Of a DNA stretch of 64,000 nucleotides, positions 1 through 40,692 are shown in pieces. Each line of letters begins with the position of its first letter. Within the stretch, counting starts at the first letter, position 1. The notes below the pieces were generated by a model. It saw only the letters and a program-made list of their open reading frames with translations, was not told the DNA's origin and ran no database searches. Source of the stretch: Trichosphaerium sp. ATCC 40318 (Eukaryota; Protista; Tubulinea). The DNA is taken from NCBI GenBank assembly GCA_038496445.1, contig JALMLS010000138.1, positions 186,001-250,000 on the forward strand. Reading direction: 5' to 3'. The position numbers were made by a program, and so were the translations under genes.

Positions 1-1806
1 AATTTAATAGTTGGAGTTGTAGTTGTAGTTTGTTTGTTTGCTGGAACGAACGCACAACTGCCTTGCAACCAATTCAACGATGGTAGATGTACCAATAACA
101 CTTGTCTTGCAGATTCCTCAACTTGCCAAACGTGTTGCAGTTAGTAGCTTAGTTTGTAGCCTTATTCTTAGCATATTTAGTTCGTCCAGAAGACATTGGC
201 TCCTCAACACTGGGTGTTTGTTACCAATACCTCAATCCAACAGCCCAAATATGCGACGAGAACTTTCAAGTGTGCGAATCTATACCCACGGACCCCAATG
301 ATCCTACCATATGCTTTGCTGGTATCCATAGGAACGTTTCTCAATGTTACGATCCTACGTCGCAACAATGCTTTGAGGGGGAAATTTGTGATGGCTTAAA
401 CAGTGATTATTGCCCTCCAGGTTAGCTTTTTTGTTACCGTTTTCAGTTTTTCAGTATAATCAGTGTAACAATATTAGCTTTAAGTGGAGGCCCTGGTGGT
501 TGTTTTATCCCTTCATCACAATCTTGTCTTTCTGGTAGAATATGTGACGGAACAGACGCCGCTTTCTGTCAATCCGGAGATACTTTCGCAGACGAAATCT
601 GTTTCAGACAAAACTCACAAACTTGCACCAACTTAGGAAATGGTATCAAGCCGCAAGTTTGCGATGGATTAAGCTCCCAATACTGCCCTGGTAAGTATTT
701 TGTATAAAATGAAAAAAAACCGCTAACGATGTAAAGCTGATAATGGAGATCCTGTCACATATCCTGGAGGTTGTTATGACCGAAGCAACCAGTCCTGTAC
801 AAACGGATTTATATGTCCTGGTGTGAACCAAGGTCATTGCAGGACAGCCAACGCAACTGTAGGAGGTTGTTATGATCTTGCAAGCGAACTGTGTCTTTCC
901 CAGTTTATTTGTCCTTTTGGCGAAACTTTGTGTCCAGGTACGCACTTCATGCCAAGCCAACACATACTTACTCGTTATAGTCGGTCGTTTCCCAGGAGGT
1001 TGTTATGACCCTGACGTAAACAGTTGTCTTGATGGTTTAACGGAATGTCTTAAAGAAGAGTTTATTTGTGAAGGTATAAAAGTAAAACTACAACAGTTAC
1101 TTAACGGATTATGAAGCGGGTTCTTTTGGTACCAATTATACTTGCTTCAACCTTCAGAATGAGAGCTGTATCAGTGGAGCAATATGTAATAGATCATCAA
1201 ATTATTGCCCAGGTAGCGTAGACGATAAAACAGAACTGCAAACTAATATACGGTTACTAGGTGCTGATGTTTGTTTTGATCCTAGCATTTATAGTTGCTT
1301 TAATGGAGAGCTTTGCATTGCCGGTGTAAATTGTTTCGTTGGTATGTCTTTTTTTGATGGATATGATGTTATTTACCGAAATATGTAGATGAGTTTCCAA
1401 CACTTTCGCCAACAGAGAAACCTACACCACCTCCTACAATAGCTCCTACAACACTACCTCCTACGACCGAGGCACCATCTACAGAAGCGCCTACAACTGT
1501 AGCGCCCACCGCAGCTGCAGATGAGACCTTAGGGAACCAAATTAATGCGATGTGGCTGATTCTTTTGGTTGCAACTATTTGTGCGTAATTTTTATTTTTT
1601 GCTGAGCTAACTGCTGCAGTGTTTTGTGTGTTTATTGTAGGCATGGGTTATTGCTTGAAAAGATTAAGATCCGGAGAGAGTCAAAAGAGTAACCCAGATA
1701 TTTATGTTGCCTTAGATAACATCAACTAGGCTACGAGCAACAAGACATTGAACTGGATAATGAAGGTGCACTATACGAGCCTGATGGAGGATACGATAGG
1801 GAGTGA
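1..1806 (+). CDS. Cys-rich repeat type I membrane protein (GGCYDP-type repeats, Pro/Thr stalk, TM, short tail); start codon just upstream of window
   Basis: Spliced translation: NLIVGVVVVVCLFAGTNAQ (signal peptide), repeats such as QCYDPTSQQCFEGEIC and GGCYDPDVNSCLDG, stalk PTLSPTEKPTPPPT, TM MWLILLVATILFCVFIVG, tail ending YEPDGGYDRE*. Many short GT-AG introns. Confidence 0.8.
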
Positions 1807-2388: not shown

Positions 2389-3605
2389 TCATGCTGTATT
2401 TTCGACATCACCGATATGAGTGTCATCTCTCTCGCAATTATTTGAACCAAAGAGACACTTCTTGATTGCCTTAAAGCTTAGCACTCTAATATAAAATAGA
2501 AATCCAAGTAGCCTATCCAAATAGTCAGAAAACGGGTGGCTACAAAAAGAATACAACGTACCAAAAACCCAACAAAACTACAACAACTCCCACAATTGTT
2601 AGCAGTATAAATCCACCAGTAAATTGTTTTTCCAGGCTGTCGGCCTTTGGTGTCACTGTAGGTAGAATTGTCCTTGTTGGTGCCTGTGTTGGTTCTTGTG
2701 TTGGTGATGCAGTTGGAGCAGGAGTTGGCGTCATCGTTGGCATTGATGGAGCAGCTGTTGGTGATTAGTGCTGTACACAAGTTTGAACCAAAAAAAAAGA
2801 ACGAAAAGACGATGTATTGATTGAAATATTGTGGCTACCTTGTTTACAATCAACTCCTTTAGTGCATACACTACCTGTAGGACATTCATGTGTTGTGTGG
2901 TTAAAGCACTGGCTATCTACACCTTCAGTTGTTGCTAAAAGAAGAGTTATTTATTGAACGAAATATCAATTTCAAAAAGAACGTACATTCACAATAACCA
3001 AGTCCATGATCGCATACAATATCCTTGAAACAGTCTTGTGTACTTTCATCATAACAGGATAGCTTTCCACTCCTCACTTTGCAGAACGTGAGAAAACAAC
3101 TTTCTGATGTTAATCGGTCGTACGTGAACATAACTTCATTCCCACAGAACAATTGGTGTAACCATCTGCGCAACTGTGTACTTCTGGATCGTAACATCCA
3201 CCAGGATAAATTCCAGCTAGAAAACACATTAATTTCAATTTCAAATCAATGATTGATGTGGTACCTTGGCAATATTCCTCTCCGATATTACAAACGTTAC
3301 CACCCGCTACACAATGCTGTGTATCTAAATGGTAACATTCGCTCTCCATTAGTTCCTGGGTATTTGCACATACGCCCATGTTTGTCTCAGAACATATTTT
3401 ACCCCCCGCACACGATTGTTGAGAGCTATCAAAGCAACCACCAACACCAAAAGGACCTATTATTTGAGTGAGTGATTTTCATCATTGTAAAAAAAAACAT
3501 AGTTTTAGATTTGACGTACCTGGGTCGCAAATCGAGTACGTGCAATTCTTACAACATGCAAGAGAAGCAATAGATAAAATAAGAAGAGTGAGTAGAGTAT
3601 TCATG
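2389..3605 (-). CDS. Cys-rich repeat surface protein, transmembrane paralog
   Basis: MNTLLTLLILSIASLACC signal, GGCFDSSQQSC and GGCYDPEVHSC repeats, P/T stalk, TM FILLTIVGVVVVLLGFWLLGFLFYI, tail ending DVENTA*. Confidence 0.8.
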
Positions 3606-6150
3606 ATGAGGCTGTTGTTGTTGCGGTTGTAGTTGTTTGATATTATGATTTTTTAAGTGCCGTTTTAAGCAATATTTTATCAATCACTTCTTTGATTATT
3701 GGTTCATCAGTTTTCGATCTTATTGTGCTGTCCTGGTTCTCAATCTCAAGCTTCAAACTAATCACATATTGTTATAATGTGTTGGGTAGTGTGTACGTTT
3801 AATCGTTTTCGGCATAGCTGAAATGTATTTTCACTCAAGTTTTCAATCTCGTCACAATTTCGCTAGTGCGATTCTTGTATCCTATTGGACACAAAATAAG
3901 GGACAGCTCGAAGGCCGTCTACTCAATGTTGTTGGAGTTGATATTGTTAGCTAAACTGTTTTAAATTGAATCCGAAAGTTTTTTTTCTAGATAGAAAATC
4001 AGTCTCTTTTTTAAATCCAGAAAAGACAACGCAATCGCTATTTCTACGCGCAAAAAAGTGATTCAGACTGGTTTTACACATTTTTGAGAACAACATGTCA
4101 GAAAGTTGCTGTGCAACGAAAAAAGTTGCTGTGTACCTATTACAAGGCGTAAAAGACTGGCGGCTTATGTTTCACATTGGTTCTTTTCAATCTTGGTGTT
4201 TTAGTTTCAATACGGCCTGTGGCGCTCTTTCATTTTTCAATGCGTATGTAGTGACACAAGAGCAATCCCGTTAAACTGTTTGTAAAATAAAACCTCCGAT
4301 AGCATACTATTCCATGCGTGAGAGGCTTGATAGCTTTGTTCGACAAAGTACTACGCAAGGTTGTAAAAGTGAGGCCTTTTAATGGTGGAGCAAACTTTCA
4401 TATTGTATGAGTGTCAGTTATGCAAGATACCGAATTGTTTAAAATACTTAAGCATAGCTGCATTTTCTAGCCACAATTGTTCTACGATACAACTTGGTAT
4501 TGAAGCATTGTGCTGCCGTTTAGCGAGAACAACATATAGTTCCTTCAGCATGTATGCAAACGAGCAGCATACGTTGGCGCAGCGGTTGGTATTCATGAGG
4601 GAGTTGAGTTTTAGAAAACTACTGCGGACACTCTTTTCAATCACGTAGAGACAAACGTTGAGTTGTTAATTGATGTTGTTAATTAATATTACTTTTTTGC
4701 TACATTTGAGACGCAAGCTGATCGACAATCTCAAGTTCTCACCTGCACAATCTAGTTTTGTTTCAACAACTACAGTAAATATGCGTGCATAACTGTTCAA
4801 AGACTTTAGAACATTCGTACTGCAATGTTTCAAATTTGTCAAAAATTGTTTAAACCTTTGAAAAAGCTAAAAACTCAAGAACTATCATTAATAATACGCG
4901 CAATACATTGATCTAGACAAGTAATTTTAATGACCTCAACACTTAAATACAATGAACTTGTTTGGCTTTATTGCGATCGCTACAGGCTATCGTTTACTCT
5001 ACCAATACTGCCGAACAAGAATGAAAACTTCAACACAAAGATTGAAAGCAACCAATGTGAAACATAAGCCGTCAGTCTTTTACGCCTTGTAATAGGTACA
5101 CAGCAACTACAGCAACTTTCTGACATGTAAAAATGTGTAAAACCAGTCTGAATCACTTTTTTGCGCGTAGAAATAGCGATTATTTAAAAAAGAGACTCAT
5201 AATCCTATGCAACAACTAATTCGACCAACAAGATTACAACAATAATTTAACGCCTCACACATTCGAACTGATGAACCAATAATCAAAGAAGTGATTGATA
5301 AAATATTGCTTAAAACGACAACTCATAATACATACAACCGCAACAACAACAGCCTATCATGAATACTCTACTCACTCTTCTTATTTTATCTATTGCTTCT
5401 CTTGCATGTTGTAAGAATTGCACGTACTCGATTTGCGACCCAGGTACGTCAAATCTAAAACTATGTTTTTTTTACAATGATGAAAATCACTCACTCAAAT
5501 AATAGGTCCTTTTGGTGTTGGTGGTTGCTTTGATACCTCACAGAAATCATGTCTGGGGGGTAAAATATGTTCAGGATTGCTTATCGGTGTATGCACGAAT
5601 ATCGAGGCGCTTATGGAGAGCGAATGTTACCATTTAGATACACAGCATTGTGTAGCGGGTGGTAACGTTTGTAATATCGGAGAGGAATATTGCCAAGGTA
5701 CCACATCAATCATTGATTTGAAATTGAAATTAATGTGTTTTCTAGCTGGAATTTATCCTGGTGGATGTTACGATCCAGAAGTACACAGTTGCGCAGATGG
5801 TTACACCAATTGTTCTGTGGGAACGAAAATATGTAAAGAGGGAAGAGAGGCAATCTGTTACGATGAAAGTACTCAGGACTGTTTCAAGGATATTGTATGC
5901 GATCATGGACTTGGTTATTGTGAATGTACGTTCTTTTTGAAATTGATATTTCGTTCAATAAATAACTCTTCTTTTAGCAACAACTGAAGGTGTAGATAGC
6001 CAATGCTTTAACCACACAACACAAAATTGTTTTACAGGTAGTATATGTACCCAAGGAGTCGATTGTAGAGAAGGTACTTATTTCAATCAATACATCGTCT
6101 TTTCGTTCTTTTTTTATTCTCCTATCATTCAATCTTTTAACTTTTGTACA
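2780..6150. repeat. Inverted duplication: left arm about 2780-4200, right arm about 5030-6150, unique spacer about 4200-5030
   Basis: Reverse-complement identity of gene bodies (about 2800-3630 vs 5335-6115) and of upstream blocks (about 3660-3712 vs 5266-5316, and about 4000-4200 vs 5030-5196). Confidence 0.9.
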
Positions 6151-6354
6151 GCTCTAGTCCCAATAGATACCCCAACACGAATGCCAACTATGACACCTAC
6201 TCCTGCACCAACCGTATCACCAACTGTAGCACCAACATACACACCAACAAAGGCGCGAACACAAACTAAACAACACTCGGGATCTGCTTCAAACAGTATG
6301 ACGACCACAGTGATTATAGTAGTGTGTCTTATGTTTGCTATGGTTCACATTTAA
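5359..6354 (+). CDS. Cys-rich repeat surface protein, probable GPI-anchored paralog
   Basis: Same signal peptide and repeats as 2389-3605. Ends SGSASNSMTTTVIIVVCLMFAMVHI*, i.e. small residues followed by a terminal hydrophobic stretch and no tail. Confidence 0.8.
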
Positions 6355-9372: not shown

Positions 9373-9882
9373 ATGTCAACAGATAAACAAAAAACAACCG
9401 TGGAATACGTTCAAGAAAACTTGGCTGCGGCAGCTACATACGTTCAGGAGACCGTCGCTGGTGTTACACAACCAAGAGAACCTGCAGACAAACTAGCAGC
9501 TGCAGCTTCAACAGCTACAGATGCTGTAACCGAGGCAGGAAGCAAGGCTGTGGAAGCCGTCAGTTCAGCAGGAGAGTCTGTTAAAGATACCACCGTAAAA
9601 GCTACTTCAGACGCTATAGAAGCTGTTAATGAAGCCAGTAGCAATGCTGCAAAAGCTACAACTGAGCTTGCTGGAAATGCCAAAGAAGCAACCAATGAAA
9701 ACGCTCAAACAACACTCGAGTACATTCAACAGTCTGTAACGGACACTGCCACCTATGTCAAAGAAGCTGTCATTGGCACTCAACCTGAAAAAAAGGTTGA
9801 AGATGCAACAAAAGAAGTTGTAGATGCTGTAAAAGACGTAGGCGAGAACGCCAAAAAAGCTGTAAACGCGAGCACGGAGTAA
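9373..9882 (+). CDS. LEA-like Ala/Thr/Glu/Lys-rich helical protein, intronless
   Basis: 169-aa ORF with no Cys, Trp or Phe. Internal repeat TTVEYVQENLAAAATYVQETVAG / TTLEYIQQSVTDTATYVKEAVIG. Confidence 0.7.
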   Translation: MSTDKQKTTVEYVQENLAAAATYVQETVAGVTQPREPADKLAAAASTATDAVTEAGSKAVEAVSSAGESVKDTTVKATSDAIEAVNEASSNAAKATTELAGNAKEATNENAQTTLEYIQQSVTDTATYVKEAVIGTQPEKKVEDATKEVVDAVKDVGENAKKAVNASTE

Positions 9883-10974: not shown

Positions 10975-11560
10975 AAACCTTTATCAAGCAAGCTTTTGCA
11001 GGTGTTACAATTTTTCTAATGTACAAAAAGAGAGAGCAGAGAACGATCAGAAAGACACATGTTGATATAAAACAATAATGAAACGTTATGGGTTTTGTAA
11101 AGAGTATATTAGTGCTATGTTTAGTAAACAAGCCTTTTCAAACGCCATTCTTGCGTCGTAAACTCTTTTTATTGTTCACGTGATAACGTGGCGCTGCTAG
11201 TGCAGTTTTACTCTTTTAGGTGCTGAATTAAAGCTATACGCGTTGTCCCTGACGCTATTTGGTAGCCACAGTTGCGTGGTTGTGTAGAAATTACAATGTG
11301 CGAATATAATAACCAGATGGCGCGATGAGATTTTAACAATTGTTCACCAAACATTTCTGATCAAGACCAAATACTCTCAAAAACCTACCTATACTATACC
11401 TAACATACAATTCTAGTTTGGAACGCAGTTTTTGTTGTAATACATGTTCTGGTAACAGCATGCGAACAGTATTTCTAACTTTTCTTCAAATTTTTTTCAG
11501 TGAAAAAAAGAGCCTATCACAACATCTGCAAAACCAAACATATTCAAACCTCACACCAGC

Positions 11561-12525
11561 ATGACAACACATAAACAATCAACCGAAATATGGCTCGTAA
11601 GACATGGATGTACAGATTACAACCTTGAAGGACGTGTACAAGGTACCTGCAAAACAATCAAAAGTGTGCTTGTAACAGTAGCTTACGGCTCTTTGTACTA
11701 GGTCATATTGATACCCACTTGAACGAAGCAGGCAGACAGCAAGCACATAAACTTATGCACTATCTCAGAGGACTAGATAAGCCATTCCACGCGATATATT
11801 CATCGGATTTGAGTAGAACTGTATGTCTTCTTCTCAATTACTAAACTCTTACACTTCAGATCTGAGATCGATCTTCGCTCCTTTACCTTACTGATGTTTC
11901 ACATAGAAAGAAACAGCGGAACCACTAAAGCGCGCATTCAATCTAGAAGTACAATGCGATAAACGACTACGTCTAATCAATAAGGGGACATGGCAAGGCA
12001 TCCCTCGTAATCAAGTACATCTTCGCGATGACTACAAACACTATAAAACAACAGATGCCATACCTGGTGGTGAGTCAAGAGCACGTACGTCTACTACCAG
12101 TCTAATTGTTTTAACATATTCTAACTTCTATTTCTAGAACTTAGAGCGCGGGCAACAGATGTATTTAAAGAGATAGTAGCTAAGCACAAAGGACAGCGTG
12201 TACTTATTGTAAGTTGAGAAAGCAACCATGGTTTTTTTTTCCAATATCAACTTTTTCGATCCAATTATCTCCTAATTTCTTTGTTTACTTTCAATCTGTT
12301 GTGTGATTGAGACGCTAATAATATCTCTAGATATCTCATGGAGGCACTATAAAAGCGATAATCACACACGTGCTCAGAGCACCAATTCATTCGTATTTTC
12401 CATTAAATATTACAAATACAAGTATTACGAAGATTCTACCTGAAGAAGAACATACTTTTGCTCGAGACGTTAAAGGAAAGATAGTAGCTATAGGTGCTGT
12501 ACCTCATCTGAATCAACAATTGTAA
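11561..12525 (+). CDS. Histidine phosphatase (phosphoglycerate mutase-like) family protein
   Basis: IWLVRHGCTDYN, IYSSDLSRT, IPGGES and VLIISHGGTI motifs across 4 introns. Confidence 0.9.
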
Positions 12526-12961
12526 CTTGGTAACCTGTGTTAATACCAGTTCATTGGCAATAAAGTAACTTATTTAAACAACGTTTGAGTAGCAAGTGTT
12601 AACGTGATCATCCATCATCCAACTACCTAACGCCACAGACTCAAAAAATACACAGGCAAAATTCACAGTACTAGGCAGAGTGACAAAGGAAAATTCTGTG
12701 AGGGACGAAGATACTAGCTTTTATCACGTGACACGAACTTTGTTTTTGACATATCAGTTCAACTGTAAACGCTCACAAGGACTCAAGCTACCACAATGTT
12801 AATCCCATGAGACCACGTATGCTGATTACTGTTGTACGACATGCATCTCAGTAGCTACTTCAATTCTTCAGAAATCCTACAAGAACCAAACTGCTTTTTT
12901 ATGGAAAATTGCTTCTTTTTGTTTTTCAGTTCTGTTTACGTCATTTTTTATAAATTACATC

Positions 12962-14033
12962 ATGTACGGCGGCGGAGCTCCACCACCACTCAGTAAGCGT
13001 ATCTTTGACAAGTATGATAAGGTACATCTGCAACTAAAAAAAAACGACTTTGCTAATTGGGAATAGGACGATAGCGGTTCTATCTTGAACGCTGAGTTCC
13101 AGGCTATGGTATACGAGCTTGGATACCATTTGAAAGATGAAGAAGTTGCTCTTGCTTTAAAGAAGTTAGACGCGTACGTAAAGCCAACTAAACAAGGATT
13201 TGCTTTCTTTGTACTCGTTTTTCGGTACAATTCGTTCTGACCCGCTAAATAGTAACGGAAGTGGCTCTATTGAATACAAAGGTACAGTAAACAGCGATTC
13301 CCACCCTTGTGAACGCGACAACACTTCGGCCTGCGAGTAATCTTTTCACAACAAGGCGTACACGCCACGTTCTTGTTTCAAGACGCAAATACAAGACCTT
13401 TCGTTTTTTGTAAACTACGGCCTTTGCTCACTTTGTTTTTTTCCAGAGTTCAAGCCTTGGTGGTCTTCTGATGATCGATTCGGTAAACTACAACTAACTG
13501 AAAAGGAGCTTGAGTCATTACAACAAGCTGTAACGTACTTTAACTACTTTGACAAAGACAGTACGCGATCCTTGTTTTTGTTGAAATAAAAAGAGTTTTT
13601 TTTTTTTGGCATTTCAACACAAAAACACAAATAACTTTTCATTCTCTCGCCTGACAACTATTGTTTATCGTTTTTACATATCTACTACTATTAAATGTAT
13701 CTAATATATGTTCAGAGAGTGGTTTACTAGCTGCAGGAGAGTTTACTGCTTTCCACAAAGTACGGTCTTTTTTTTTTTGAAAGGATTTAGTTCGAATGAA
13801 AATTAATGCTCTACTGTAGAATCTTGTTGATAATAAAGTGACTACAATGGACCACGATAGCCTTTTATCTACTCTGGATACTGATTCTACTGGAAGCATC
13901 TCATTCAACGGTACGTTTTGTTTCAATAAATGTTTGACAAATTGGGTCTTTTTGTTTCTGGACATATCAGTAATGTTTTTTTTCAGAGTACGTCAATTGG
14001 CTCCTCAAAACTGGCGCTGTAAAAGTAATGTAA
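12962..14033 (+). CDS. Calmodulin-like four-EF-hand calcium-binding protein
   Basis: Spliced loops DKDDSGSILNAE, DANGSGSIEYKE, DKD.SGLLAAGE and DTDSTGSISFNE. Confidence 0.85.
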
Positions 14034-14412: not shown

Positions 14413-17400
14413 TTAATCTGAGGATTCTTCTTCAGAAGATGATTCTTCTTCAGATGATTCTTCCTCAGAGGATTCCTCTTCAGAGGAGGATTCTTCCTCA
14501 GACGATTCTTCTTCAGAGGATTCATCGTCTTCGTCTGATGATTCTTCATCACCAGATGATTCATCCTCATCAGAGGATTCATCGTAAGAGCTGGACTCTT
14601 CATCTACATCACCAGATGATTCATCATCGTCAGAGTCATCATCGTCATCGTCAGAGTCATCATCAGATTCAGAGTCAGAGTCATCATCGGAGTCAGAGTC
14701 AGAGTCGTCGTCATCATCAGAAGATGAATCACCGCCACCGACACCGACACCAACATTGACGTTAGCGCCACCGGACATTTCAGCACCATGTGGTTCCTTA
14801 GCACCACCAGATACTTCATCATCGTCACCCTTCTTTCTAAAGAGAAGTACGACAACGACGACAATAAGGATAAGTACAACAACGGCAACAATTACTACAA
14901 TAAGCATTAGCGACAAATGTCACAATATTGAGATCAAACCAAAAAAAGTTTCAAACCGAAAACTTGAACACGTACTGATACCGGCAATAGCACCACCTCC
15001 AAGACCACCATCTGGTGGAGATACGGCAGCTGCAGTTGGAGTGGCAACTGGAGCAACTGGAGCAACTGGTACAACAACTGGAGCAGTAGGTGCAGGTGTA
15101 ACAACAGGACGAGTAATAACTGGAGATGCAGCTACGTTCTAAATAAAATAATCAGACAACAGACTTCGAAAATGCAAGCAAAACAAAAGTGAAAAACGTA
15201 CATCAACACCAACAGAAACCCCGTTAGTAGCAAGAGCAGCACTCAAATCAGCACCAGAGGTAGGACTGTTTACAAAACCGACAACACCAGCTGTATCTGC
15301 AGTAGCAGAAGTGCTGATACTGTAAGTGGTAGCTGATTGACGTTTGGTAGCAGTGACAACTACGATAATAGGATCAACTGAAGAGTTGGTGACGGTCTTC
15401 CATGTGCTCTTGAGAGTTGTAATTTCATTGTCTGTGAGGGGACGGTCAAAGGTTACTAGAACTGTAATGTTTCCGTCAGTTGGGCATTGTTCGGTTTGTG
15501 CATCAGCAGAAGCCATCTCACTCTACAAACAAACATAACGGTTAGAACGAGGTAAAAAGACAATAAAATTGCTTTGGGTTAACAAGACGTACACCAAGAG
15601 TCCATTCAAGGGTAGTTGTGAAGTTAATTTGGACAAGACCAGTTTGGAAGTTCTTGTTTTCGAATCCAGAAGCAAAGCTGGTTGGTTGGTTGGTAACCTA
15701 AGTTTACGAATAAGAACACAACATCAAAGCAGATAAGATAGACGTACAGAAGCAGGTGTAGATCCATCAATCTCGAAAGTGTTCATGGCTGTTTGAGCAT
15801 TAATGGTAATGAGGTCAGAGCCTTGAAGGTTCCAGCCAACGAAAGCTGTGAATCCATTGTCGGTAGGGGAGATGCAATCAACGAATGGAGTAATGGTTAC
15901 TACAGCAGCAGCAGTTGGTGCAGTTGGTTGAACTGGAGCTACAGGAGCCATTGTAGGTGCCAAAGTTGTGACTTGTTGGCACGTAGTAGGCGCTGTAAAC
16001 TCAGGTACGATAGTAGTACCAGTAGGGCGAGTTGGTAAGATGCTTTGGATGACGTGAATGACACCATTGGAAGCTGGGATATCAGCAATACAGACAGGAA
16101 CTCCGTCAATAGTGATGGTAGAACCATTTTTGACAACAGTGATATTTTGCCCGTTGAGAGAAGTACCGACAAGTGTGGTACCCTCAGGCACATCAGCAGA
16201 GAACAAAGCAGCGCCTTCAACAATGTGAAAGTTCAACAAGGACAATAATCCAAGTCCCAAAGTGTCATTGGTAAGACTGTCAATCAATGTTTGGTTTGTT
16301 TCAGCGACAGCGAAAGCCTAAAGGAAATATCAGCAACAACTGGTACAATTATTTTAGAGAAAAACGTACAGCAGAGGCTGGTACAAAAGCAGTGAATGTT
16401 TTAGTGGAGTTGCCAATGTCAGCAAAAATACCAGCAGGAGCAGAGTTGATAATATTGCCAGCAACTTGGTTGAAAGTAGCAGTAATTGCAGAAAATTGGG
16501 TAATTGCAGCAATGGTAAAATCAGGATGGATGAGTGCGTTGTCAATAGCATGAGCGACACCATTAGAGGCGAGGACATCAGCAATTGCGACAGTAGCAGG
16601 GAAAGTTGCAGAAGGGTTGATCTTTACAGTTCCATTTACTACAGCTAACTCAAGTGAAGCAGAGTTAGCAGAGACGAGAGTAGCGCCATCAGAAATTCCA
16701 TCAGCGTAAGTCTACAAGAAAAATGAGTTCAAAAAAGAGAAACAAGGCAAAAAATACAAATATTGAGGAATTGAAGCAAAATACGTACAACGCCTCCAAC
16801 AGCATGGTACAAAACAAATTTTGAGGCCATAGCAGTGTCCAAAGCAAGGATATCAACAAAATCAGCAGGGAATTTGTCGAAAGCAGCGTTGACAGGACCA
16901 AAGACGGTCAAAGGAGTGTTGCTGTTGAGGGTAGGGAGCAATCCAGCGCCAGTAGCGAGCTTGGTGACTTGTGCGAGTTCGCTAGAACCAGCAGCAATTC
17001 CACCAATAGTGAGAGCAGGGAATAAAACTTTGTTTACTCCATGTATCATAAAGTTAGAAGACATAATATCTGCTTCAACAACGGCGGAAGGTTCGCTGGT
17101 TGGGTTTTGCAAAGCTGCATTAGGGTTGAGCTTGACAGTTCCCGAAACGTTAGTAGCTTGGATAGCTTGAGGGACGCTGGCGTTGAAAAAACTTGGCAAT
17201 TTGCTGTACAAACGGGTCTAGTCGTAAAGTTAGATCCATTTTTTGAGAGAAAAAAAACAAGCGCTATGAGAACGTACAGGAGTGCTTCCAAGGAGAGTGG
17301 CAGCATCGACAAAAACAGGGGAAGCTGGGTTAGTACTCCAAATGTGGTACTTGAGAACAGAAACAGTATCTAAAAGGATTTAGTGGTCGATTTCTTTTGT

Positions 17401-18551
17401 ACGTTGCGCATAAAAACAAATATAAATAACTACAAAAACCGTACCGTTAAAAGATCCAAGCAAGGCTTGTGCTGCAGTAAAGGCTTCATTGGTTGGAGCG
17501 AACAAGTTGTACATTCCAGTGCTGTTAGCAATAATGTCGGCAACAGCAGGATAAGCTTCAATAGCGGTAACGAGCATACTGTAGTTTGATAAACCTCTCA
17601 AAACCTCCAAAGCATTTTGCTTTGCTAAAAGTTAGTAAAGTATTCGTAAAGTAATATACGTACAAGACCGACAACAGGTGCTGCGGTTGTAGGAACAACA
17701 GGTGCTGCGGTTGTAGGAATAACAGGTGCCGCGGTTGTTGGAGCTACAGTTGTTGGAGCCACAGTTGTTGGTGCGACGGTCGTTGGTGGTCCAGCAGTTG
17801 TTGGAGCTACAGTTGTTGGAGGTCCAGCAGTTGTTGGAGCCATAGTTGTTGGAGCTACAGTTGTTGGAGCTACAGTTGTTGGTGCGACGGTTGTTGGAGG
17901 TCCAGCAGTTGTTGGAGCCATAGTTGTTGGAGCTACAGTTGTTGGAGCCACAGTTGTTGGTGCGACGGTCGTTGGTGGTCCAGCAGTTGTTGGAGCCATA
18001 GTTGTTGGTGCGACAGTTGTTGGAGCCACAGTTGTTGGTGCGACGGTTGTTGGTGGTCCAGCAGTTGTTGGAGCCATAGTTGTTGGTGCGACAGTTGTTG
18101 GCGCTACAGTCGTTGGCGCTACAGTTGTTGGAGCCACAGTCGTTGGCGCTACAGTTGTTGGAGCTACAGTTGTTGGAGCTACAGTCGTTGGCGCTACAGT
18201 TGTTGGCGCTACAGTTGTTGGAGCTACAGTCGTTGGAGCTACAGTTGTTGGAGCCACAGTTGTTGGCGCTACAGTCGTTGGAGCTACAGTTGTTGGCGCT
18301 ACAGTTGTTGGCGCTACAGTTGTTGGCGCTACAGTCGTTGGCGCTACAGTCGTTGGCGCTACAGTTGTTGGAGCCACAGTTGTTGGCGGTAACGTTGTTG
18401 GAGGTAACGTTGTCGGAGGTAACGTTGTCGGTGGTAACGTTGTCGGAGGTAACGTTGTTGGAGGTAACGTTGTCGGAGGTGGAGTCGCCTGACCAATAAC
18501 ACCACTGAGCAGCACAGCTGCGATAAATAAATAAATAAGACTGTTATGCAT
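14413..18551 (-). CDS. Fasciclin (3x FAS1) type I surface glycoprotein with PTTVA mucin stalk and Ser/Asp/Glu-rich cytoplasmic tail
   Basis: Signal peptide. FAS1 H1/H2 motifs LFAPTNEAF..DIMSSNFMIHGVNKVL, TVFGPVNAAF..DVLASNGVAHAIDNAL and TAFVPASA..DIPASNGVIHVIQSIL. TM VVIVAVVVLILIVVVVVLLF then RKK, followed by an acidic tail. Confidence 0.9.
17675..18480 (-). repeat. Coding 15-bp minisatellite encoding PTTVA/PTTLP units with higher-order blocks
   Basis: Tandem gttgttggagctaca-type units. Higher-order repeat PTTVAPTTVAPTTMAPTTAGP. Confidence 0.95.
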
Positions 18552-31734: not shown

Positions 31735-34700
31735 TTATGCTGTAACAAAGTAGGAGGCATTTTCGTTACTATGCTCCCTTTCATTGTCTCTTGATATATC
31801 CTCATCAAAAGCTAAATTAATCTGTACTGATGTTTGTCGTATATCGCCACTTGTGTAAACTATTGGCCAACTAAAAAAAAAAACTTGAGTAACAGAAGTC
31901 AACAACTTACAAGAAAAAAAACATACCCTCCATCTGAATCGAATATGCCAGCAGCTGAAGCAATTACCAAAGTATCAGCACTAGTCACAGGTACAAACAC
32001 AGGGATAGGTCGAGGGACAGAGCTAACCATTGATGATACCATTCTTACATCAGTATTTTCAGCTTCATATGCAATAGTTCTACCATTAAGTGTCGTAAAT
32101 CTACCACTACCTGCGTCTACAATAATAACACCAAGGGTCTCTGTAGCTCTTCTGCGGTCCAAATCTTCACCAACATGCTTACCAACATTGATTTCAAACC
32201 TGTCTGGTGGAGATATTGCAAAACTTCCAGAAGCCCAAAAAGAACTCCATTTGGCATCATTAGCAGTCATTACTTGTCCAAGTACAATAGGATTAAAGTA
32301 ATCGCGGGTCTCAAGCTGTTCTCTATTTTGACTCCAAGCGCCTTCGAATGCGGTAGTGGTTGATTCTACTCTTCTCGCTTCCATTTGGATACCATGAGTT
32401 GTCTATAAAAGAGTGAGTTTTTGTGAATCTGCAGATCGCGCAAATACGTACAAACGAGTAAACACCTTCGTCTACTATGACACAAAATACACTTGTTGGA
32501 GGTGCAATACCTTCTCCAGCAAGTTGCACACGTAGTCTTATTCTAAAAGAGGATACTACATCGACACGGACTACTCTAGGTTCCCCGGAAGTGTACGAAG
32601 GTGTACAAACAACAACCTTTTGTATACGTCAGTATCATAGTTTGATTTTTTTGAGGGTTGATTTACGCACCATACTGTTAAAAACTGACGCAAGATTGAA
32701 TACTTGCCATTCGTTTGTCAAAGTTTGTCTAATTTCCAAATAGTTTATATTTACGCGACCAGCTGTAGGAGTAGCAGTGGGCGGACTTGTTACTGGCGGA
32801 CGGGTAGTTGGTGGATTTGTATTTGGAGGGAGTGTGGTTGGAGGACGTGTAGTTGGAGCACGTGTTGGAGGGAGTGTGGTTGGCGCAAGTGCAGGAGCAC
32901 GTGTAGTTGGAGAACGTGTAGTTGGAGCACGTGTCGTTGGAGGACGCGTGGTTGGAGCGCGTGTAGGAGGGCGTGTGGTAGGAGGACGGGTAGTTGGAGC
33001 GCGTGTAGTTGGAGCGCGTGTAGTTGGAGCACGTGTAGGAGGACGTGTGGTTGGAGAACGGGTCGTTGGAGCACGTGTCGTCGGAGCACGTGTGGTTGGA
33101 GCACGTGTTGTTGGAGCACGTGTTGGTGAGCGTGTTGGTACTTCACCTCCACAGTCCAAAGGGAAGTTAACAGTAGCTATACTACCGTCTTAAGTGAATG
33201 TTAGATTAAGAGTTTTTTGAGGTGAGGATTATGTGCCTGCAAAGAGAATTGGATTTTGACCGCCTCTAGGTGCTTGGAGTGTGTCAAACTTTATATTATC
33301 AAGGTGAGCTAGGCCAACTGGAACTTGGAATTCAAGTTCAATGGAGTCAATATCACCAAGAACTTGTGCGAAGGAGCTCAATGAATTTCCATTTACATAG
33401 ACGGTTGTTCGGCCAAGCTTTGTAAAAATTAGCTAAAACGCTGACCAAAGGATTTGTATTGATTTTAGAGATGGTTTCAAAAAACGTACAAGGTCATTAC
33501 GGTCAACGGTGAATTGCTGCCATTCTTGAAAATCGGTGAGTTGGAAGGGTATACCTACTGAAACACCAGACTGCACGAATACGTTAACTTGAGTATCAGT
33601 TGCGAGTGTAAACGTCAGTTCTGTTGCTGCACCAATTCTTAACCGGAAGAATGAGCTTGTTGCTGCAACTACATGGCAGTGTTAGCACGTGTGAAGTCTT
33701 TCAAGAAAGCAAAAAAAAAGTTCAAGAAAGGTTGCTTTTGTTTAGGTGTTCCTATTTGAACAATAGTTATTTTCGAGGTACTTGTACTTACAGTCTCTAC
33801 TAAACCTGAAATAAAAAGAAGCCAATATCCTTCTTGTATTTGTGTCAATTGAAGGGGCTAGAACAATCGTAAATTTTTCTATACTCCGGTGATTGCCAAG
33901 GGCTAAGTATCTACTACCCTAGAATTTATTGATTTAGTATTCGAGAGATAATTTTTTGATGGATAACGTACCTGTGCGGCATCTCCTTCGACTACATTTG
34001 CAAAATCATTATTAAATGCTCGTCCTACAGGCATTGTCTCAAAGTTATTCGAAACAGGGAAAGGAGCAAGTATTCTTTTTCCGATCTGATTTTCTTCATT
34101 TTCTATTGTGAAACCAGATACTTTTTGTGGAATGATAACACTAGTAGAATTATAAGGAAAACAGTGTATAGGAGCCTTTAAAAAAACCCCAACAACATCA
34201 ACGTACGGAGCTCCGACGCTAGCGGTTTTAAACATTTCGTCATTCTGGAGATCTTGAGGAGAGATTGAATTCTCAAACCTTGATCTATCAACTTGGTATC
34301 TAAAGGTAATAGTTTTAGTATTTATTTCTCTATACTGTAAGTTCTCTATCTTTTTTTTTTGCTCTTTCTTTCAGTTGATTCACAAAAGTCGTGTACCCTA
34401 GTTTGTAGAGTTCTCGAAGAATAGAGGCTTTGATGCCAATGGTAGTGTTCTTGACGTTGTGATTTAGGCCGCTAGAGAAGTTCAGTATTTGGTTGGAAAA
34501 AAATGTGGCAGCTAAAGAAAATGTTGTTATTATGACGTACAGGCAGTAAAGTAGTTGGCGTTCTATCGTAGCTTGCAGTTTACCATCCTTAAGAGCTTTT
34601 TCCATGTATACTCTGTCTATTTCTATTATTGATATAGCCTGTAGTTTCGTAGTTAGACGATTATTTCCGTGCGTTTCAACCAGTGAAAAAAATAAAATAA

Positions 34701-39151: not shown

Positions 39152-40692
39152 TTACATTTGAATATAACTGTTTGGAGTTTCGTATGTCTGTGGTTTTCTT
39201 AGGACAAAGAAAGCGACAATAGCAATTATAGCTACAAGGAATAGACATCCGAATACAATACCAACAATACCTACAACTGGAATACCACCTGAACCGGAAT
39301 CTAAAACAAGAAAGTTAGGAATTTAAACTCAATACAATAGCACAAGACGGACAAAAAAGAAAGGATTTTTTTGGTTTTTTGGATTTTTTTTTGTTGGGTC
39401 ACGTGACTAAAAACTACTTGGTAATGTAATTACACAATTATTAAAAGCAACAAAATTACTAATTTTTTTATGATCTAGCAAACACCACTACATCGTTCAG
39501 GCTGCTACTGCCTATTTTGATGTTCGCGATGCAAAAAAAACCAAAAACCAAGACGTACTGTCATTTGATCTTGACTCCTCAGCTTGCTTGAAACTACCAC
39601 TTGCAGCGGACATTACTGAGTTACTCTCAGAGAAAACCTGGTAGATGAAAGTGTACTTTCCTTTACCATTCTTACATTTAGATGATACAAGCGTTACTTC
39701 ACCATCAGAGTATTTTTCTAACGAAGAAAAAAATAAATGACTTAATCCACGTGCTTGCGCCTATTTTGGCGAAAAAAGTGCTAACAAAGAAGTACGTACT
39801 CGCAACCTTAGCAAGAACCTTTTGAGCTGTAACACATTTTTTTCTGGTGATTTTTAGAAGCTCCTAAAAAACAAAGGTTAGAGCGTATTAGGTTGTATAC
39901 TTCACATACTGCTTGAGGGTATCCGCAATTGCCTGTTGTAGGTGCTACACCTGCTGTAGGAGCTAATGTCGTCCACCATCCAGTTGGTGCAACAGGTGGT
40001 GTAGGATATGCTGTTGGAGCTGGCGATGGTGTTGGGTAACCATGTGTAGGAGCTGATGTCGGCCACCATCCAGTTGGTGCAACAGGTGCTGTAGGATATG
40101 CTGTTGGAGCTGGCGATGGCGTTGGGTAACCATGTGTAGGAGATGTAGGTGCTACAGGAATTGATGCTGTTGGACCTGGCGATGGTGTTGGGTAACCATG
40201 TGTAGGAGCTGATGTCGGCCACCATCCAGTTGGTGCAACAGGTGCTGTAGGATATGCTGTTGGAGCTGGCGATGGCGTTGGGTAACCAGGAGCCAATGTA
40301 GGTGCACCTTGTGTTGAAGGATGACCAGGTGTAGGAGCCAACGTCGTCCACCACCAACTTGTAGGTGCTACAGATGACGATGTTGTAGGACCTGGGTAAC
40401 CAGGTGTAGGAGCATGTGTTGTAGGCATCGTTGTATAATGTGGATAAGGTGAATAGGTGCGGGGAGCGCTATTACCAGGAGCTTGTGTTGTATAATGTGG
40501 ATAAGGTGAATAGGTGCGAGGAGCGCTATTACCAGGAGCTTGTGTTGTAGGCATCATTGTATAATATGGATAAGGGGCTTGCGTTTTAGGTGCCGCAGGA
40601 CGCTCATTACCAGGTGCTTCTGTTGCAGGTACTCTTGTCTGGCAGTAACAGCTAGCTACAACCAATACGCATAGTAGTATTACTTTTTGCAT
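39152..40692 (-). CDS. Pro/Thr/Tyr/Trp-rich mucin-like type I membrane protein
   Basis: Signal peptide; repeats HGYPTPSPAPTAYPTAPVAPTGWWPTSAPT; small Cys-containing domain; TM VVGIVGIVFGCLFLVAIIAIVAFFVL; tail RKPQTYETPNSYIQM*. Confidence 0.82.

Follow-up and report, generated by a model that had tools for sequence, protein, structure and literature searches.

Genes A and B are head-to-head paralogs at positions 2389-3604 (minus strand) and 5359-6354 (plus strand) of the window, i.e. the whole 64,000-nt stretch of Trichosphaerium sp. ATCC 40318 DNA that was analysed here. The pair very probably represents an old inverted duplication under patchy concerted evolution by non-crossover interlocus gene conversion. 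Along the two genes, four near-identical tracts alternate with three patches that are approximately 31% apart (permutation p<1e-4), and this mosaic recurs in a second assembled haplotig.

Gene models and predicted anchors

The models of both genes were derived from the sequence alone and comprise the following features.

2389-3604, minus strand: gene A, seven predicted exons, 290 amino acids, with signal peptide, five four-cysteine repeats, Pro/Thr stalk, transmembrane segment and a tail of about 33 residues
3604-3520, 3456-3265, 3216-3124, 3076-2987, 2934-2839, 2754-2562 and 2512-2389, minus strand: predicted exons of gene A
3077-3123, minus strand: intron of 47 nt present only in A, at the usual inter-repeat phase-1 position of the family
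2488-2611, minus strand: predicted transmembrane segment of A, split by the intron 2561-2513
5359-6354, plus strand: gene B, five predicted exons, 246-251 amino acids depending on the choice of the last acceptor, laid out as A but with a GPI-like end
5359-5443, 5506-5697, 5746-5925, 5978-6073 and 6152 or 6167-6354, plus strand: predicted exons of gene B
6277-6354, plus strand: rule-based GPI-like signal of B, consisting of Ser-Gly-Ser, a polar spacer, 14-15 hydrophobic residues and the stop

The repeats shared by the two proteins are about 28 residues long. The introns of gene A are of the GT-AG type with lengths of 47-84 nt, and its reading frame is open in both haplotypes. A and B do not differ in exon 1, which encodes the signal peptide, nor in introns 2 and 3, as the original prediction had stated, while intron 1, also counted there as identical, differs by one homopolymer T (63 vs 62 nt). 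The 47-nt intron 3123-3077 was probably lost in B rather than gained in A, because the neighbouring gene as well as the paralogs on contigs C150 and C5 have a donor site following the corresponding repeat.

The anchor types were judged by hydropathy and omega-site rules, the GPI rule asking for small omega residues 17-31 positions from the end. These predictions agree with the earlier assignment of a transmembrane segment plus tail to A and a GPI-like end to B, which combines a signal peptide with omega candidates at 20-24 residues before the C terminus, a polar spacer and a hydrophobic run. The tail of A depends on the predicted 49-nt intron inside the transmembrane segment; at this position the C73 paralog also has an intron, which is confirmed by a transcript-derived protein. 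If the intron 2513-2561 (minus strand) were retained, A would stop after about 24 hydrophobic residues, and A alone could thus yield transmembrane and GPI-like forms through splicing. An alternative splice adding a tail to B was judged unlikely, since it would need a 32-nt intron with a weak donor and an acceptor at which the alleles differ by three changes. Remote homology between the transmembrane-intron region of A and the 3' end of B was not significant (p=0.08). With expression and anchor type both predicted, A and B are probably ordinary co-existing cell-surface proteins, one transmembrane and the other GPI-anchored.

Layout of the inverted repeat

Self-comparison of the window paired the arms 2674-3712 and 5266-6250 in an alignment of 1057 columns (84%), and the blocks upstream of the two genes pair in the inverse sense as well. 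The inverted repeat of two divergent genes with their upstream blocks is therefore real, with innermost arms separated by 817 bp of unique DNA in place of the roughly 830 bp given originally.

3605-3712, minus strand: 5' flank arm of gene A, partner 5266-5358
4033-4207, minus strand: upstream homology block of gene A, partner 5025-5181, 86% with 53 identical bp inside
4208-5024, no strand: unique spacer, in identical orientation in the second haplotig

Neither further copies of the upstream block elsewhere in the genome nor a match in Rfam were found. A bacterial promoter scan was not applicable here and its result stayed at chance level. The same self-comparison of the window revealed three internal tandem-repeat regions (17725-18487, 32776-33140 and 39955-40629), the first of which resembles the coding sequence of the Pro/Thr stalk. 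At 9373-9882 (plus strand) lies an open reading frame of 169 codons, rich in Ala, Thr, Glu and Lys and with short repeats, whose composition we take to be LEA-like.

Tracts and patches

The mosaic consists of the following stretches of gene A, each given with its partner in gene B.

3427-3604, minus strand: converted tract 1, covering exon 1, intron 1 and the start of exon 2, partner 5359-5535, containing the SNP 3498/5465
3350-3426, minus strand: divergent patch 1, repeat 1, codons 39-64, partner 5536-5612
3139-3349, minus strand: converted tract 2, 211 bp identical, covering the end of exon 2, intron 2 and the start of exon 3, partner 5613-5823
3036-3138, minus strand: divergent patch 2, end of repeat 3 and linker, partner 5824-5876, including the intron present only in A
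2889-3035, minus strand: converted tract 3, covering repeat 4, the shared intron 3 and the start of the next exon, partner 5877-6023
2829-2888, minus strand: divergent patch 3, repeat 5 and the start of an intron, partner 6024-6078
2792-2828, minus strand: converted tract 4, 37 bp identical within the last shared intron, partner 6079-6115

Over the four tracts (3604-3427, 3349-3139, 3035-2889 and 2828-2792 in A) only one substitution between A and B occurs in 572 bp (0.2%), and the longest identical run reaches 211 bp compared with a shuffled mean of 45 (p<5e-5, 20,000 permutations). Each tract covers an intron, and synonymous sites are likewise matched; hence, constraint at the protein level cannot account for them.

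The strongly differing exon patches noticed originally are present at codons 39-64 and 119-137, and a third one was found at codons 169-185. For patches 1, 2 and 3, pS amounts to 0.65, 0.46 and 0.30 and pN to 0.24, 0.31 and 0.22, respectively, values that come from small counts and, for patch 2, from an uncertain alignment. Because pS exceeds pN, the patches look like old, fixed divergence under constraint. Allelic differences inside the patches amount to 0.5-1.7%, and hypervariable or hypermutated cassettes were ruled out, since the alleles are nearly identical there and dN is below dS. Thus, the comparison of identity and dN/dS bore out the mosaic along the genes but showed the patches as fixed rather than variable.

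Comparison with the second haplotig

The genome search found a single further copy of the A/B pair, on contig G000:C489, which runs parallel to this region at 94-98%. There, the spacer points the same way as in the window, with which it and the gene ends are collinear. The patches of A stay with the transmembrane end and those of B with the hydrophobic end, and the comparison of the two assembled haplotigs found no A/B chimeric genes in the second one. Inside the tracts the paralogs are 0.2-0.9% apart and the alleles 0.7%, while the flanking alleles differ by 0.9-1.3%. At the intron-1 SNP 3498/5465 both paralogs are alike within each haplotig. The SNP 3426/5536 (Ser/Thr), the first site of patch 1 and present in both paralogs, is swapped between them across the haplotigs. 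Two of the five allelic sites of B coincide with sites among the six allelic ones of A (P=5e-4, for two assembled haplotigs only). Together with the sites fixed between the paralogs, the four copies hence display all three possible bipartitions (paralog-fixed, haplotype-shared at 3498/5465 and swapped at 3426/5536), and all three groupings among four sequences require repeated exchange.

Other allelic differences were noted as well. In the second haplotig, 24 bp are inserted in frame into the Pro/Thr stalk of A (near 6545-6570 of contig C489), and a Ser-to-Pro change at codon 116 of B removes one N-glycosylation sequon. On the same contig, 11412-11760 and 12849-13181 form a 72% direct repeat, of which contig C40 also carries a copy about 4 kb upstream of the window.

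The promoter of B differs between the haplotigs.

4705-5265, plus strand: upstream region of B that is replaced in the second haplotig by an inverted copy of the upstream stretch 3795-3713 of A, with a 4-nt microhomology at 4701-4704

The inserted inverted copy is about 83 bp long, and the 5' flank of B is A-like there. The haplotype-shared SNP in intron 1 goes together with this event, of which the swapped SNP and the tracts are independent. The junction has the form of a chimera from multiple displacement amplification (MDA), namely an inversion with deletion at a short microhomology. Such chimeras are mostly inversions with deletion, arise within 10 kb and are primed at 2-21 nt of complementarity (PMC1855051). 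The copied stretch shows 3-4 differences from either A allele and matches neither exactly, which favours a genuine event, even if polishing could blur this mismatch. We regard a genuine event as somewhat the better supported reading, and an MDA chimera as a serious possibility that falls short of an even chance. In vivo, the junction would represent a one-sided conversion with end-joining closing the other side.

Origin of the mosaic

Gene conversion, as already proposed in the original prediction, is supported by the identity of introns and synonymous sites, the low distance between the paralogs in the tracts and the two shared SNPs; the latter, together with the promoter of the second haplotig, fit recent interlocus conversion. 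In the likely course of events, the copies would first have diverged to about 30% at the DNA level, with B losing one intron and the C-terminal anchors becoming unlike. Breaks in one arm may then occasionally have been repaired off the nearby inverted arm by non-crossover conversion, each repair rewriting a tract of about 40-210 bp, while dense mismatches or indels, as in the intron present only in A, the stalk and the anchor, would have shielded other stretches. Selection may also hold repeats 1 and 5 apart. It was considered for patch 1, because this patch is free of indels and spans repeat 1; it shows no non-synonymous excess (dN<dS), and selection against its homogenisation is a tentative suggestion, with the chances leaning against it.

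Comparable cases are known. In Caenorhabditis elegans, adjacent inverted paralogs have been documented to undergo conversion with tracts that extend into introns; the hsp16 modules and hsp70-7/hsp70-8 are also head-to-head neighbours with intron-spanning identity and segregating converted alleles (PMC3966223). In contrast to these heat-shock pairs, A and B encode surface proteins whose predicted anchors are unlike, and the genes differ by one intron. Divergence peaks within converted sequence have been described in Drosophila, and the Teshima-Innan model, applied to CG18281/CG17637, matches the A/B pair in its islands of high divergence in homogenised sequence that are the same in both alleles (PMC2588116). 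Different from the Drosophila case, the A/B patches show no non-synonymous excess, in a comparison that covered a single species.

It had further been proposed that a crossover between the arms inverts the middle like a shufflon. The geometry behind this idea was right: with identical tracts of up to 211 bp at distances of 1.7-2.8 kb, inversion is feasible, and now and then a crossover could exchange repeats between the two anchors. Were it to fall in tract 1, the promoters would trade places; in tract 2 or 3, repeat 1 or repeats 1-3 would pass from one anchor to the other. The tracts kept alike by conversion would then serve as crossover sites in a multinucleate amoeba, whose nuclei or clones would differ in orientation and display hybrid transmembrane/GPI proteins. 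The promoter junction of the second haplotig could come from the joining of a standard and an inverted allele, and the swapped SNP 3426/5536 looks reciprocal. However, both haplotigs show the same orientation and keep each patch strictly with its own anchor, and the patches lack polymorphism between alleles. A silent cassette is unlikely, the frames of A and B being intact and each with its own start and upstream region, and the locus yielded no recombinase gene. A search of the genome for tyrosine recombinase (PF00589), which an intron-split gene could escape, found none, and serine recombinase (PF00239) matched only on contig C482. The two equal-scoring open reading frames there (3775-4173 and 16772-17170) may belong to a contaminant or a mobile element. 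Inspection of the tract borders found no short shared recombination motif, the homology being long and patchy. The orientation was read from two assembled haplotigs; the single public sequencing run that turned up reaches 269 bp here. Redundans discards alternative contigs, such that a minority inverted form could go unseen. The R64 shufflon and the Hin, Gin and Fim systems likewise use inverted repeats whose crossover exchanges parts of surface-protein genes, but the A/B locus apparently lacks their local recombinase, conserved short crossover sites, silent cassettes and, in two haplotigs, an alternative orientation. Hence, a recombinational switch that flips the middle at a useful rate is very improbable, and the same holds for nuclei or clones of different orientation. 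If true, it would represent a DNA-inversion switch that governs a surface receptor of a free-living eukaryote without any recombinase, and it would be of wide importance.

Assembly collapse or polishing artefacts in the identical blocks had been named at the outset as what would refute the idea. A reading of this kind was weighed, in which polishing or read correction homogenised the arms or amplification chimeras gave rise to part of the pattern. The published draft of Trichosphaerium sp. ATCC 40318 (70.87 Mb, 37.7% GC, mean intron 75 bp) was obtained from REPLI-g amplified nuclei, and the likely source genome was assembled from such DNA by Canu, polished three times with Pilon and processed with Redundans (PMC10521059), steps that could distort single SNP calls and the promoter junction of the second haplotig. 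Against this stand the tract borders shared by both haplotigs, which retain private SNPs within the tracts, and patches that are in frame and rich in synonymous changes. For the junction, the inexact match of the copied promoter and the required second switch back into B argue in the same direction. As an explanation of the tracts the artefact reading is weak, and overall it appears very improbable. Recent duplication followed by fast positive selection in the patches, without any conversion, would fit the radical amino-acid changes in the inter-cysteine loop of patch 1 and the restriction of patches to exons while the tracts cover introns. The many synonymous changes (pS up to 0.65) with dN below dS largely refute it, and it leaves the intron difference and the shared SNPs unexplained, so that hardly any probability remains for this scenario. 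Patchy conversion between old inverted copies therefore stays the preferred explanation.

The repeat family and its distant relatives

The repeats of A and B belong to a family of at least nine genes on contigs C40, C5, C52, C73, C150 and C189 with transmembrane or GPI-like ends. As both end types recur across this dispersed family, the anchor difference between A and B is a family trait. A larger relative with about nine or ten cysteine repeats, stalk, intron-split transmembrane segment and tail is located at 1-1806 (plus strand) of the window, and its last repeat matches PF10645 weakly (E 0.004). A two-repeat transmembrane member was found at L009:5990-6600 (minus strand; G000:C40, about 182,000-183,300), and facing away from it lies a frameshifted fragment like repeats 4-5 of A and B (L009:7080-7290, plus strand); judged from these remains, the two form a second, decayed divergent arrangement.

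Homology searches were done with single exons, and three of these searches additionally used the natural open frame 5508-5924, in which intron 2 is read through. Word-based searches, Atlas features and PDB sequence searches gave no match for A and B, and the homology searches found no orthologues of A or B. The repeat profile retrieved the transcript protein P0004 (MMETSP0405) from Trichosphaerium sp. ATCC 40318, which is 87-93% identical to the C73 paralog and has repeat, stalk, transmembrane segment and tail as in the layout of the A/B family. It represents a different family member, approximately 34% identical to the A/B exons.

The repeats of A and B appear distantly like the Pfam Carb_bind domain (CBM52, PF10645). 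The A/B exons themselves gave no match to PF10645 at all, and the repeat of the neighbouring gene scored 17.8 bits, below the Pfam cut-off of 25 bits. The family profile retrieved the PF10645 proteins P0002, P0003 and P0005 above cut-off, and 26 of 62 aligned relatives match PF10645 weakly (E<=0.05). The pattern C-Y-D-P-x4-C-x2-G-x2-C of the repeat is shared with PF10645 and galaxin-like cysteine repeats. Eng1 of Schizosaccharomyces pombe contains three copies of CBM52 (PMC9609564); unlike such PF10645 proteins, A and B possess neither a catalytic domain nor a PF10645 score. A first structure model was poor (pLDDT 54). A model of two repeats reached pLDDT 90 with short beta strands, and showed weak shape matches to galaxin-like/Carb_bind clusters (TM 0.55) and granulin (Z 3.6); a Foldseek search with it gave no match. 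The cysteine-rich repeats are possibly glycan-binding or adhesive.

Collectively, the locus is a new instance of a known process with an ordinary cause, the concerted evolution of inverted paralogs, and the second haplotig shows conversion still active, which makes it a tidy case in a little-studied amoeba. Furthermore, the analysis points to a previously undescribed family in which a mucin-like stalk carries CBM52-like repeats and whose role may lie in adhesion or the recognition of glycans.
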